64,000 nucleotides of DNA from assembly GCA_002269645.1 (NCBI GenBank), contig NIVC01002381.1, forward strand, positions 62,153 to 126,152, given 5' to 3'. This document shows, piece by piece, positions 26,435 through 55,873 of this stretch. Under the pieces are notes generated by a model. It was given only the letters and a program-made list of their open reading frames with translations. It made no database searches and had not been told where the DNA came from. A program made the position numbers and the translations under genes. The DNA is from Macrostomum lignano. Lineage: Eukaryota. Every line of letters starts with the position of its first letter. The first letter of the stretch is position 1.

Positions 26435-26878
26435 TCACGTCCTCGAGTTCGGGCAGGGCTCGCACGAGTCGCACTCGGCCAAAATCGTGCGGTCCTTTTT
26501 GACCTCCAGCACTCGGCAGTAGCCTGAGCAGCAGTCCTTGCCGCTCCAGCACCTGGCAGTAGCCTGAGCAGCAGTCCTTGCCGCTCCAGCACCTGGTGCC
26601 GCCTTCTGAGCACGACTTGCTGGATGAGCAGGCCGGTGCCATCTCTAGCTTTGCAGTGAGGAAAATTGTGTATTTGTATAGATACTTTATATACTTTATA
26701 TAGAGTCTTTGGGGTTAATGGCCCTCCTGGGTGCGAATGGCTCAGTATAACCCACCAGAGCCATGCAATACCTGTACTTGAAAAGAAGTCTCAATTGTCA
26801 GTTAATAAATGGCATTGCAAATGCATAAAACAGCTACTCACGCGTAAGAAGAGTTATGATAATCAAAAAGTTGAACAT
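26435..26878 (-). CDS. Secreted knottin-like peptide gene C (contains a 40-bp internal duplication)
   Basis: Exon 1 26842-26878 (MFNFLIIITLLT, gtgagt donor), phase-1 intron, exon 2 26435-26644. With one 40-bp copy removed: QMAPA|CSSSKSCSEGGTRCWSGKDCCSGYCRVLEVKKDRTILAECDSCEPCPNSRT*. Confidence 0.75.
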
Positions 26879-27400
26879 TTGTAATTTAGTGAAGAAGATG
26901 GAACTGTGTGCAAAGTGCAGTTGGGTTCGAAGATCGGTGGTACTGAGACTACGGACACTTGGCTGCATGATGATGGAGATGGATGGAGAATGATAATTAG
27001 GCTTAGTTCTGGCTCAACTGCTGCCATAGACGGTAAAGGCCTGACACAAATTGAAGAGACAAAGAGAAGGTTCTGTAGCTGCCGGCGGAGACTGTCCCGC
27101 CAAGGGCGGGTTTCTTGTCTATGGTAAAAAGTCAAACTTCTCTGTGGCACAGTCAACTGCAAGTGCCAGGGGTTCTCAATTCCTCTGCAAGACCTGGTCA
27201 CTAAAATCTCAAGCTTACATGATGTACTTGCTGCTTGCTTGGAATAGAACTGCCCTTTTTACGCAGTTATAGAATTTCTACTGGATACATGTAATTATTG
27301 GTCTGAAAGTTGGTAGCGGAAATGAAAGCTTAGCAATCTCTACACACGGATATATTGCGGCAGAGATCAAAACTGGGTGAAAAGCACAGGCTGGGCTGGC

Positions 27401-27940
27401 GGCAGAGATCAAAGCGGGGCAGCAGGGCACAGGCCGAGTTGCCGGCAGAGATCAAAGCGGGGCAGCAGGGCACAGGCCGAGTTGGCGGCAGAGATCAAAG
27501 CGGGGCAGCAGGGCACAGGCCGAGTTGCCGGCAGAGATCAAAGCGGGGCAGCAGGGCACAGGCCGAGTTGGCGGCAGAGATCAAAGCGGGGCAGCAGGGC
27601 ACAGGCCGAGTTGGCGGCAGAGATCAAAGCGGGGCAGCAGGGCACAGGCCGAGTTGGCGGCAGAGATCAAAGCGGGGCAGCAGGGCACAGGCCGAGTTGG
27701 CGGCAGAGATCAAAGCGGGGCAGCAGGGCACAGGCCGAGTTGGCGGCAGAGATCAAAGCGGGGCAGCAGGGCACAGGCCGAGTTGGCGGCAGAGATCAAA
27801 GCGGGGCAGCAGGGCACAGGCCGAGTTGGCGGCAGAGATCAAAGCGGGGCAGCAGGGCACAGGCCGAGTTGGCGGCAGAGATCAAAGCGGGGCAGCAGGG
27901 CACAGGCCGAGTTGGCGGCAGAGATCAGAGCGGAGCAGCA
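27401..27940. repeat. 43-bp minisatellite, 12 units, just downstream of the knottin gene B stop (9 units of a different variant at 36420-36830)
   Basis: GGCAGAGATCAAAGCGGGGCAGCAGGGCACAGGCCGAGTTGGC. Confidence 0.95.
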
Positions 27941-27951
27941 GGCACAGCAGC

Positions 27952-52139: not shown

Positions 52140-52545
52140 TTTTCAAGAGAGCTGGATTAAGAAATTGAATGCATAGACTTGGTTTCAAAAAGGCGAAACC
52201 CCAACAATTGCTTCATGCTCAGCCTGCAACGATGCCGAAATATCTATGGCCCAAGCAGGCATTCAAGCTCTGCATTAGCACAAGAAGGGTACTAAGCACA
52301 TTGTTGCTGTTGCTGTTACCATGAAGTTGCAGCACTCTATCAAGCATTTTTGCCAAGCCCCTGGCTGAAAAGGTTGATGTAGCTAAGCCAGCTGATCAAG
52401 TTATGGAAGCTGAGCTTTGTTGATGTCTCTATCTGTGCAAAACAAATACCACAATCAATTTGCAGGATCATTTGGCCCATCTTTTTGATTGAATGTTTCC
52501 AGACAGCCAAATTGCTAAAAGATGACCTGCAGTTGAACAAAGCTA
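52140..52545 (+). pseudogene. Decayed hAT-like transposase fragment (BED-type finger and FPDS motif)
   Basis: FQESW...TWF...CSAC...H*HKKGTKH followed by MFPDSQIAK; stops and frameshifts present. Confidence 0.6.
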
Positions 52546-54907
52546 TTGACATTGTACCTTCTTGTTCATGCCATGGATCCATTCTTCCAGAAAAGTCTGG
52601 TAGAACTGCTGAAAACGACACCAAAACAACACTAGGCCTACTATGTCTATCATGCCTATAATGTATATGTCATTAGGCCTACTATATAAATTATTTAATA
52701 AGTCAGTTCTTTAGGTCTCTGCCTCAGCCTGAGGCTCAGGGATTAAGTTAATATAAACATTTTTGGGTAGGATGTTGGCATAGACCTTAGTCCTATACCT
52801 AAAATAAGTCATCGTAGTAGTAGTAGTAGTAGTAAGTTTGGCTCAGGCAAGAAGCCTATTTGGCCAATATATTTCAATGTAGGGGGCCTAATTTAATAAA
52901 TTTCAATAAATCACACTGAATAGTAATTCAAGAGAGAAGGATGGAGTTTTGCAATAATATGTAATGTATCTTTATATCTATTTTAAAAGTAATCATATTT
53001 TGTACTTATTTTAAATTGTGCATTGTTTGTACTTGTATTCTATTTATATTTTACTGTACTTTTTACTGTATGTATTTATGTTTATTTTGCTGGACAGTTT
53101 AAAATAAAGCTTGTTTTAATGACTAATAATTAACTAATGTAAATATGAGTCATCGTTTTTTGTAAGAGTTCGCCGCTCTAATTTGGCATTGGCACTCTGG
53201 TCTCGACTGACGATTCAAATATTCAAATGGGACTATTCAAATTTATTACAAATATAGTATTTGAAAGAGCACCAAATTTTTCTACGAAACTTTAAACGAT
53301 CTTTAACGACTAACAAAGCAAAAAGTAAGAAATTAAAAAACAAGTATTGTATGAAATTTATGTATAGCAATTCGATTGATCCCGTAGGTAATGAAAAATA
53401 AGTTGGCGTCACTAGGGGAGCGCATAGATGCTGGCAGGGAGACAGGATTTCAATACTAATCTCCGGCTTAAGCCAAAAAAGTTCTGCAACGTCAAAACGA
53501 AATGCAAATAGGTATTGATCAGACAATAGCAAAAATCAAATGTAAGGATTGTTGGCAATTATTAGGCATTAAAGATGAAGGATATTTTTTAAAAGCAAGT
53601 ATAGGAGGAAATGACCAAAAAATAGAGCTCTTAAGTCCGCTGATAATAGAAAATATTTGAGATGAGACTGACACTCGGAAATAACAAACATATCTGCTTC
53701 TTCTAAACCACAAAACCTTAAAGCCATTTTACAGGAGAAACAAAGATAAACAGCCTTAAAAATGGATCTCCCAATTAGAATGATTTTTATAATTAACCAA
53801 AAAATGATTCACTTTCCTATTTTCACAGTGCACTAGATTAATATTTGCAGAGTGCGAAAGTACTCGCTTGCTCTCTGTTGCTTCAAATTTTTATTAATCT
53901 ATTAATAAAAAAGATTAATAAATTAAAAAATTAATAATTTTTATTTTTATTATAACTTAAACGAGAGCAAGCTTTGTGAATGATGTAATATGAGCTGCCC
54001 ACTAGAGCTACGCACAAAGCGGTTTGCACTCGTACATTTAACAATCAGCCGATCTCATGAGTAAATGTATATGTCTCATGATTTCCTCATCGTATCCAAC
54101 TGAAGATGATGATCCTAATGTGAAGAGCAGTCCTTGATGTGAGACTCGGTTGGCATGCTGACTGTCTTTGTTTCAAAATGAGGCCTAAAACTCGAAGATC
54201 GTCTATCTCCTCCTGAGAAAAATGCTGACCTTAATTATAGCTGGGCGAGGCCGGCTGGGGCGGGTCCATGAGATTTGCCCGCAGTGCATTTTGCCCTTGA
54301 GCGAATTGCCCGTCGAGTTTTTCCCGCCGAGATTTGCCCGATTTGCACATACTTTGCATGTAGTGCTATCCCAGACGGCGAACGGGCAGGAATGAGTCAA
54401 TTAGAGTTAGTCTAGGGATCTTTTGAAGGCTTTAATACTTCTGCATCAGCTCTATATGGCGACAAGTTGACAAATTTCAGGCCAAAAGCGAGAAAGCACA
54501 TGCACATGTATTTTCTGAGAGTTCAATGTACTTCGTACGAGTAATAGTGCATCCAGCGGAGAGACTCCTCAGCGCAGGAACCCCTGGAAAGTCTTCTCTG
54601 TCCCTGCATGGACACGACAACACCCTGGCCGATTTTCGTGCACAAGCCTCAAATGAATGTGTGACCGCGGGCACGGAATTGAACGAATTAGGGTCCGCCT
54701 CTCAATTACAGTAGCTATATGTACAGATACATGCGCCAGAAAGTTTTCATCCATGAAATGTTTGGCTATATGAAGTCCTGGCTTGCTAATCTGTCCAATT
54801 TAATAAATAATTGAGCATTGATTAATCAGTCGACAAGGCGTTCTGGAGAACGGGAAGTTTGCAAAGTCACAGCGTCACTGCGAGGGAGCTCCACTCGCAG
54901 TCATCGA

Positions 54908-55873
54908 TCAAGCGCACCGGAATACCTTCTTCCTATTGCGGATCGCCACCATGGAGCAGATGCCACTGCAGCAGTCGGAGTCGCTCTGCGCGCACTCGGT
55001 TCCGGTGGCCTTGCAGCGGTCTCGCAGGCAGGTGGAGGCGCTGTCTTAAAATGCCAATGGTTTTACATTAAATTTTAGATTTTTCGATAAGTTTAAATAA
55101 TATCGAATTCTTGTTCGATAACACCTAATTGTCGAAGAAGTCATGAAAAATTAGGTTGTCTGTCATTTCGGACAGGACGACATCGCGACCAAATGTCTTT
55201 CCATCGAACACTACAATCCCCTTTGACAGCTCTAGACTGAGCTGACTGATCCTACCCGCTGCAATCTGCTCACACTGACTGATCCTACCCGCTGCAATCT
55301 GCTCACACTGACTGATCCTACCCGCTGCAATCTGCTCACACTGACTGATCCTACCCGCTACAATCTTCTCACACTGACTGATCCTACCCGCTGCAATCTG
55401 CTCACACTGACTGATCCTACCCACTGCAATCTGCTCACACTGACTGATCCTACCCGCTGCAATCTGCTCACACTGACTGATTGTACCCGCTGAAATCTGC
55501 TCACACTGACTGATCCTACCCGCTGCAATCTGCTCACACTGACTGATCCTACCCGCTGCAATCTGCTCACACTGATCCTACCCGCTGCAATCTGCTCACA
55601 CTGACTGATCCTACCCGCTGCAATCTGCTCACACTGACTGATCCTACCCGCTGCAATCTGCTCACACTGACTGATCCTACCCGCTGCAATCTGCTCACAC
55701 TGACTGATCCTACCCGCTGCAATCTGCTCACACTGACTGATCCTACCCGCTGCAATCTGCTCACACTGACTGATCCTACCCGCTGCAATCTGCTCACTCA
55801 CAGAAGTTCTTAAATGATTATGAAACTTACTGATGATGACTAATAGACAAAATAAGAAGAACAGCAGTCTCAT
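54908..55873 (-). CDS. Secreted knottin-like peptide gene D (59 aa)
   Basis: Exon 1 55831-55873 (gtaagt donor), 786-nt phase-1 intron, exon 2 54908-55044 (ttttaag acceptor): MRLLFFLFCLLVIINSAST|CLRDRCKATGTECAQSDSDCCSGICSMVAIRNRKKVFRCA*. Confidence 0.85.
55242..55798. repeat. 33-bp minisatellite in the gene D intron
   Basis: CTGACTGATCCTACCCGCTGCAATCTGCTCACA units. Confidence 0.95.

Follow-up and report, generated by a model that had tools for sequence, protein, structure and literature searches.

A stretch of 64,000 nucleotides from the genome of the free-living flatworm Macrostomum lignano (assembly GCA_002269645.1, Mlig_3_7; contig NIVC01002381.1, positions 62,153 to 126,152 of the forward strand), hereafter the window, carries a group of genes for cysteine-rich secreted peptides of the inhibitor cystine knot (ICK, or knottin) type. 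Four distinct genes, named A, B, C and D, were modelled. Our results indicate that these flatworm ICK peptide genes form a genuine though ordinary cluster, whose mildly unusual feature is a conserved extra Cys placed just before the knot. Each of the four genes has two exons, with consensus GTGAGT or GTAAGT donors and YAG acceptors, and in all of them a phase-1 intron splits the signal peptide past the hydrophobic core. This common intron architecture speaks for A to D as a true gene family. A six-frame scan of the window revealed exactly seven exons with an ICK pattern. The preliminary description of this DNA had counted four peptide loci, but seven were found, because a tandem duplication of about 9 kb causes A, B and C to occur twice each. 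The features, in window coordinates, are the following (primes denote the duplicates).

20828..38370, no strand: tandem segmental duplication of two units, both of which contain genes C, B and A and the final exon of the clathrin heavy-chain gene
26435..26644, minus strand: gene C exon 2, QMAPA-C... knottin; the end given is the stop codon obtained after deleting one 40-nt copy, and the open reading frame (ORF) as encoded extends to 26370
26516..26595, minus strand: perfect 40-nt tandem duplication (two copies) in gene C exon 2, which shifts the frame past the fifth knot Cys
26842..26878, minus strand: gene C exon 1, MFNFLIIITLLT plus 1 nt, then the GTGAGT donor, phase 1
27952..28097, minus strand: gene B exon 2, YLRSSVA-CPATEPCLVNGVSCWSGKDCCSHYCRVLKAWPNLTFTAECT, then stop
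28216..28276, minus strand: gene B exon 1, MKIHQSVKSLLLAFFILLLI plus 1 nt, GTGAGT donor
28277..28535, no strand: head-to-head intergenic region of B and A, 259 bp, a putative shared promoter
28536..28596, plus strand: gene A exon 1, MSGWLMLLLLGLSVSSQLIT plus 1 nt, GTGAGT donor
29156..29310, plus strand (start 29159 in the NCBI model): gene A exon 2, NAGNAG acceptor, S(A)QA-CKCPRDHRGC...CASC, nine Cys
35453..35662, minus strand: gene C' exon 2, with the identical 40-nt duplication at 35534-35613
35860..35896, minus strand: gene C' exon 1
36842..36987, minus strand: gene B' exon 2, peptide unchanged
37106..37166, minus strand: gene B' exon 1
37425..37485, plus strand: gene A' exon 1, with one synonymous change relative to A (CTG>CTA)
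38125..38279, plus strand: gene A' exon 2, peptide unchanged
54908..55044, minus strand: gene D exon 2, NSAST-CLRDRCKATGTECAQSDSDCCSGICSMVAIRNRKKVFRCA, then stop
55831..55873, minus strand: gene D exon 1, MRLLFFLFCLLVII plus 1 nt, GTAAGT donor

The second exon of gene A is preceded by a NAGNAG tandem acceptor (ccag-cag, 29148-29160; copy at 38117-38129), in which the proximal AG leads to TSAQA-C and the distal AG to TSQA-C. The NCBI model of A uses the distal AG, giving SQA-C and not AQA-C; the two choices differ by one Ala in the c-region of the signal peptide. Genes A and B are divergently paired, as had been described: the two ATGs (28276, minus strand, and 28536, plus strand) face away from each other across 259 bp, a head-to-head arrangement that is compatible with co-expression and proves nothing. 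Long minisatellites fill the intron of A (13-nt unit, about 37 times, 28652-29130; copy at 37541-38099) and that of D (33-nt unit, about 17 times, 55242-55797), and another is placed just 3' of B (43-nt unit, about 14 times, 27357-27947; copy at 36376-36832).

Peptide A is a 100% match to the NCBI protein BOX15_Mlig024546g1 (hypothetical protein, Macrostomum lignano; P0001), which was retrieved with a four-peptide profile. That protein is encoded in the same assembly on contig NIVC01000107.1, at a locus (L001) situated immediately 3' of the clathrin gene. L001 is collinear with the window, with 100% identity over a core that extends from B exon 2 to A exon 1; the differences consist mostly of minisatellites, one mariner-type transposase insertion and structural changes, namely the 9-kb and 40-nt duplications. 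In the window, the segment at about 20828-29350 is repeated in tandem at about 29827-38370, with 98.4% identity over 7018 aligned bp, and the last clathrin heavy-chain coding exon is copied along with the peptide genes (21580-22209 and 30474-31229). L001 holds a single copy of this segment. The 9-kb duplication is either a structural polymorphism or an assembly artefact.

Gene C is damaged both in the window and in L001. The perfect 40-nt tandem duplication is common to both window copies of C (26516-26595 and 35534-35613), and hence it predates the 9-kb duplication or was copied by it. In the window sequence as it stands, ...CCSGYC is followed by a shift of frame that removes the sixth knot Cys and adds a tail of about 57 unrelated residues. 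The L001 allele is free of the 40-nt duplication and has TGA in place of TGC as its last Cys codon (L001 about 8100, minus strand, equivalent to about 26453 in the window); its product ends ...AECDSCEP, with eight Cys and seven residues fewer, and Leu5 of exon 1 is changed to Phe. A C chain with nine Cys arises only after one 40-nt copy is deleted by hand, and neither available allele encodes it. The alternative that the 40 nt represent a mini-intron was rejected, given that the modelled introns measure 118-786 nt and that the L001 allele simply does not have the second copy.

Several analyses uphold the earlier description of these peptides as secreted knottins: the ICK frame, the profile alignment to omega-hexatoxin-Hv1a, the Foldseek match to its structure (1AXH) and the signal-peptide exon. 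The six-Cys order C-C-CC-C-C, with loops compatible with an ICK, is present in A, B, D and a further M. lignano precursor, P0122, and in C only after the removal of the 40-nt duplication. Pfam matches were all sub-threshold and all to knottin families (UPF0506 and, for D, conotoxin O and spider toxins as well). UPF0506 (PF11703) scored 22.1 bits with B (E = 2e-4), 15.8 with C and 14.5 with D, below the gathering cut-off of 23.2, and no Pfam match to it was obtained for A. The match to B spans positions 32-57 of the 59 in the profile. The conotoxin O-superfamily cut-offs (PF08087 and PF02950; 24.3 and 25.1 bits) were reached neither by D (16.4 and 14.5) nor by P0122 (19.6). A profile search of PDB sequences returned ICK toxins only (E = 0.003-0.04). 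Among them, omega-hexatoxin-Hv1a (1AXH) is the sole solved relative that spans the full knot, its knot Cys I-VI aligning with Cys2-Cys7 of B (profile positions 26-60). The AlphaFold2 model of B exon 2 has a mean predicted local distance difference test score (pLDDT) of 78.7, with 83-90 in the knot region and an average of 50 over the first ten residues, which include the extra Cys. The top Foldseek match of this model, aligned over 35 columns, was 1AXH, with a probability of 1.00 and a TM-score (target-length normalisation) of 0.69.

An exhaustive search of 1.84 billion representatives with the profile retrieved 129 matches, mostly multi-domain proteins with six Cys per domain. The only further M. 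lignano gene it recovered is P0122, a fifth paralogue with a 7-Cys frame and the site SRA-C. P0122 is the N-terminus of UniRef A0A1I8H9W7, labelled 'C2 domain-containing protein'; this entry is apparently chimeric, joining a knottin gene (residues 1-55), minisatellite read-through and an unrelated downstream gene. Word-indexed protein searches for more paralogues yielded 2, 0 and 4 matches. The strongest profile matches, P0003 and P0004, are mosquito proteins of about 400 amino acids with at least six tandem knottin domains, and one cluster member is named 'phenoloxidase inhibitor-like'. P0002, P0059 and P0078, which have seven Cys and a Cys at or near +1, were rejected as orthologues because they sit on bacterial metagenome contigs; they are therefore not evidence for the flatworm family. 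The bacterial relatives (P0002, P0069, P0091, P0102, P0057 and P0114) often display a lipobox-like ...[AG]C after the signal peptide, so the +1 Cys of the bacterial knottin-repeat proteins is probably a lipidation site and an unrelated parallel to the lipidation raised in the preliminary description. Literature searches on M. lignano knottins, flatworm ICK toxins and Mlig024546 returned nothing specific.

In exon 2, the c-region is followed by a Cys and then by the knot, C-x6-C-x5/6-CC-x3-C-x13/14-C, with a first loop of eight residues in A. The motifs AQA-C, SVA-C, APA-C and AST-C reported in the preliminary description are all present where it had placed them, each in exon 2. The extra Cys precedes knot Cys I by 4-5 residues in B, C, D and P0122, while A has two upstream Cys (C-K-C). 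Further Cys occur at the C-terminus of A (C-AS-C) and of C (C-DS-C[-EP-C]). The first Cys is kept while its neighbours vary, an earlier remark that holds in A to D, and it extends to the further paralogue: P0122 also has the Cys after a small-x-small site, so that five of the five M. lignano genes share it. The Cys totals that had been assigned were 9, 7, 9 and 7; they are correct for A (nine), B (seven) and D (seven) and wrong for C, which is frameshifted in the window and has eight Cys in L001. An odd Cys count is thus not a rule of the family. The idea of a spare thiol deduced from that count survives for B and D, in which the first Cys lies outside the knot, and is lost for C, with its eight Cys or shifted frame.

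Homology mapping supports a placement of this first Cys outside the six-Cys knot. The CxxxGxxCxxxxDCCSxxC motif of the profile matches aligns with Cys2-Cys6 of B, which points to the first Cys of the flatworm peptides as an addition upstream of the knot. Since homologous domains mostly have six Cys each, the extra Cys appears to be specific to the M. lignano family. How it relates to the signal peptide was judged with the (-3,-1) rule, counting from where the hydrophobic core ends. The cores have mean Kyte-Doolittle values of 3.0-3.7 over eight residues and are followed by allowed (-3,-1) sites; in each of the five M. lignano precursors the rule permits the site just before the Cys, with small residues at -1 and -3. 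The geometry of this pre-Cys site is most typical in B (SVA-C, c-region of 5), C (APA-C, 5) and P0122 (SRA-C, 3). The claim that every mature chain begins with Cys can consequently be kept, as a prediction, for B and C, for which this is the best site (as it is for P0122), and is ambiguous for A and D, where the prediction of a +1 Cys is weakest.

Taken together, these observations suggest a lineage-specific cluster of secreted ICK peptides with a seventh Cys outside the knot. The likeliest fate of this Cys would be an intermolecular disulfide, an interpretation that we hold tentatively, at somewhat short of even confidence. Exon 1 supplies the n- and h-regions of the signal peptide, and exon 2 the c-region, the Cys and the knot. 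After processing, the seventh Cys would be the first residue of the mature chain or close to it, outside the knot and 4-5 residues before its Cys I. If the knot forms as in Hv1a, with which the alignment leaves the first Cys outside, the seventh Cys of B, D and P0122 would have no intramolecular partner and would constitute a spare thiol. An intermolecular disulfide, formed in the endoplasmic reticulum, would then link the chains covalently into homo- or heterodimers; otherwise, thiols exposed on proteins of the secretory pathway are retained or become capped. In A and C, the Cys of the C-terminal CxxC could instead staple the N-terminus to the C-terminus. The disulfide map is a prediction, and dimerisation is plausible. 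A biological role in defence, as a toxin or as a channel modulator may be envisaged by analogy with other ICK peptides.

Some of the data weigh against this interpretation. The sample of paralogues amounts to five from a single species, and the AlphaFold2 model of A is unusable (pLDDT 51). The predicted cleavage site is ambiguous in both A and D. In A there are four other allowed sites, among them VSS-QL near the hydrophobic core, and the pre-Cys site implies a c-region of nine residues in the NCBI model; in D, INS-AS, SAS-TC and STC-LR are close alternatives, and Thr at -1 is the weaker choice. Signal peptidase may therefore cut elsewhere in some members, and the regularity at +1 may partly reflect a small-residue c-region common to the paralogues. 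We regard this as unlikely, though a serious competitor, because the pre-Cys site is the most typical one in B, C and P0122, with Ala at -1 and Ser or Ala at -3, and because small residues occupy both positions in all five precursors. A comparable, minor share of our confidence goes to an extra Cys that forms no intermolecular bond, either as a free or capped thiol on a monomer or, in A and C, as part of a fourth intramolecular disulfide between N- and C-terminus. C argues for the latter: its L001 allele, with Cys1, six knot Cys and one C-terminal Cys, allows full intramolecular pairing, which suggests that Cys1 can pair with the C-terminal Cys in that lineage. Moreover, the C-terminal CxxC occurs only in A and C, the two peptides with extra N-terminal Cys beyond the single spare one or with long tails. 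On the other side, B, D and P0122 keep the first Cys though no partner within the molecule is possible, and free exposed thiols are generally disfavoured in secreted proteins. It must also be considered that B, C and D, in part or all together, may be pseudogenes or relics that are not expressed, in which case the Cys arithmetic would have no functional meaning. The frameshift of C in the window and its TGA truncation in L001 agree with this view. A is the only gene with an annotated model; in Mlig_3_7 there is none for B, C or D, and the exact precursors of these three, with splice and allelic variants tried, were not found in a collection of 15 billion proteins. Nevertheless, short ORFs are often missed by annotation, A is annotated, and in B and D the ORFs are intact, the splice sites follow the consensus and the ICK frame is complete, so we consider this reading quite improbable. 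B is identical in three copies, but so is the flanking non-coding DNA: from B exon 2 to A exon 1, the comparison of the window with L001 gave zero substitutions in exons or outside them, and hence it is uninformative on selection.

Two lipid-based explanations of the +1 Cys carry much less weight than the intermolecular disulfide. The preliminary description had raised acylation of the type found in Hedgehog and Spitz as a possibility; here a putative flatworm Hhat/Rasp orthologue would N-palmitoylate the N-terminal Cys and give membrane-tethered lipidated knottins. A plausible signal-peptidase site directly before the Cys in five of five paralogues is in keeping with this, and a lipidated ICK peptide is known, omega-PLTX-Pt1a, with O-palmitoyl-Thr near its C-terminus (PMC4231235). 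The rules for Hhat substrates, derived from Shh, state that an N-terminal Cys is insufficient, that Lys is excluded at residue 2 and that the first seven residues must include a basic one; of 87 human proteins predicted to have Cys at +1, none besides the Hedgehogs was shown to be a Hhat substrate (PMC8061759). C (CSSSKSC) and P0122 (CPPKFCT) satisfy the residue-2 and basic-residue rules. A carries at position 2 (C-K-C...) a Lys that Shh does not tolerate there, the first seven residues of B (CPATEPC) include no basic one, and position 2 of D is Leu, a residue missing from those listed as tested. In addition, the N-terminal hexapeptide is tethered to a knot Cys just 4-5 residues away. Because A and B violate the published rules, N-palmitoylation is unsupported, and we consider it very improbable. 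A less radical novelty would be a covalent A-B heterodimeric knottin produced from the head-to-head pair. The +1 Cys could also be imagined as the relic of a lipobox, left after a knottin gene was transferred horizontally from bacteria. Of the single-domain relatives that share the 7-Cys frame, the best, P0002 (VSA-C), is located on a bacterial contig beside an IS3-type transposase, and several bacterial matches are evident lipoproteins (LASAC, FSGAC, VVAC). Against this, the M. lignano genes carry spliceosomal introns inside the signal peptide, and their peptides depart from the lipobox [LVI][ASTVI][GAS]C, with S or A at -3. To our knowledge, eukaryotes are devoid of Lgt and Lsp. P0002 scored just 35 bits with the M. 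lignano-only profile (E = 4e-3), and the ICK motif is generic, the best multi-domain matches being mosquito proteins. The likelihood of such a transfer is therefore close to nil.

The window is eukaryotic DNA, with a GC content ranging from 0.29 to 0.70. A multi-exon clathrin heavy-chain gene occupies about 10.6-22.2 kb on the plus strand, and a C2H2 zinc-finger ORF and a UBX-domain exon are also present. The pol region of a retrotransposon of the long terminal repeat type lies at 34-3650 on the minus strand (GC 0.63-0.70); Pfam recognises the integrase core, reverse transcriptase and RNase H, and the frames are broken or overlapping. An uninterrupted ORF of 529 amino acids at 40987-42576 (minus strand) gives only sub-threshold TPR matches in Pfam; it sits in the part of the window that can be aligned with L001, where there is no gene call for it. 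A vertebrate origin of the DNA, suggested by the IFIT-like look of this ORF and by the clathrin and zinc-finger genes, was rejected on the exact match of A to M. lignano. L001 contains a mariner/Tc1-type transposase gene (HTH_48 and Transposase_1, 353 amino acids) at 16444-17808, which is missing from the window at about 43686.

If the peptides are expressed, M. lignano, a free-living model flatworm for which RNA interference by soaking and in situ hybridisation are routine, would possess a knottin family so far uncharacterised. The 7-Cys frame would then imply covalent dimers or a reactive thiol, of possible interest to toxin and peptide chemists and to researchers of flatworm secretion. Should the slight chance of Hedgehog-type acylation come true, the flatworm peptides would be the first knottins to carry N-palmitate and would add a new class to the Hhat substrates, outside Hedgehog and the EGF ligands. 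The locus has no bearing on a long-standing question and is a modest curiosity. It also offers lessons for annotation: of the four genes, three lack an annotation and one is broken by a 40-nt duplication, and a 9-kb tandem duplication was hidden by the count of four peptides.

Comparison with known systems helps to place this family. With omega-hexatoxin-Hv1a and the ICK toxins of spiders and cone snails, the flatworm peptides share the C-C-CC-C-C frame, similar loop lengths, a C-terminal beta-hairpin and a signal peptide. They differ in having one to three extra Cys, one of them 4-5 residues before Cys I, and in being without a propeptide; the sequence scores are weak, and nothing indicates venom or toxicity. 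UPF0506 has a knottin fold generally found in Schistosoma, and it is also present in a protein of the Schistocephalus secretome (PMC8400842). Flatworm origin, secretion and richness in Cys are common to this family and the peptides described here, and it is the best Pfam match of B and also matches C and D, whereas the N-terminal half of the family domain is absent from the M. lignano peptides. The top profile matches outside M. lignano, insect phenoloxidase-inhibitor-like proteins and Myxococcales knottin repeats, share the CxxxGxxCxxxxDCCSxxC motif; in contrast, they are arrays of 3-13 domains with six Cys each and without the extra N-terminal Cys, and several of the bacterial ones are lipobox lipoproteins. 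Hedgehog and Spitz resemble the flatworm peptides only in the predicted N-terminal Cys exposed by signal peptidase. There is no sequence kinship, the flatworm Cys is tethered near a disulfide knot, and A and B break the substrate rules. The plectoxins omega-PLTX-Pt1a and delta/omega-PLTX-Pt1a are O-palmitoylated ICK peptides (PMC4231235), and their lipid shows that an acylated knottin is chemically and biologically possible. That lipid is ester-linked to Thr or Ser near the C-terminus and not to an N-terminal Cys, and the kinship of these spider venom peptides with the flatworm family is that of the ICK fold only.

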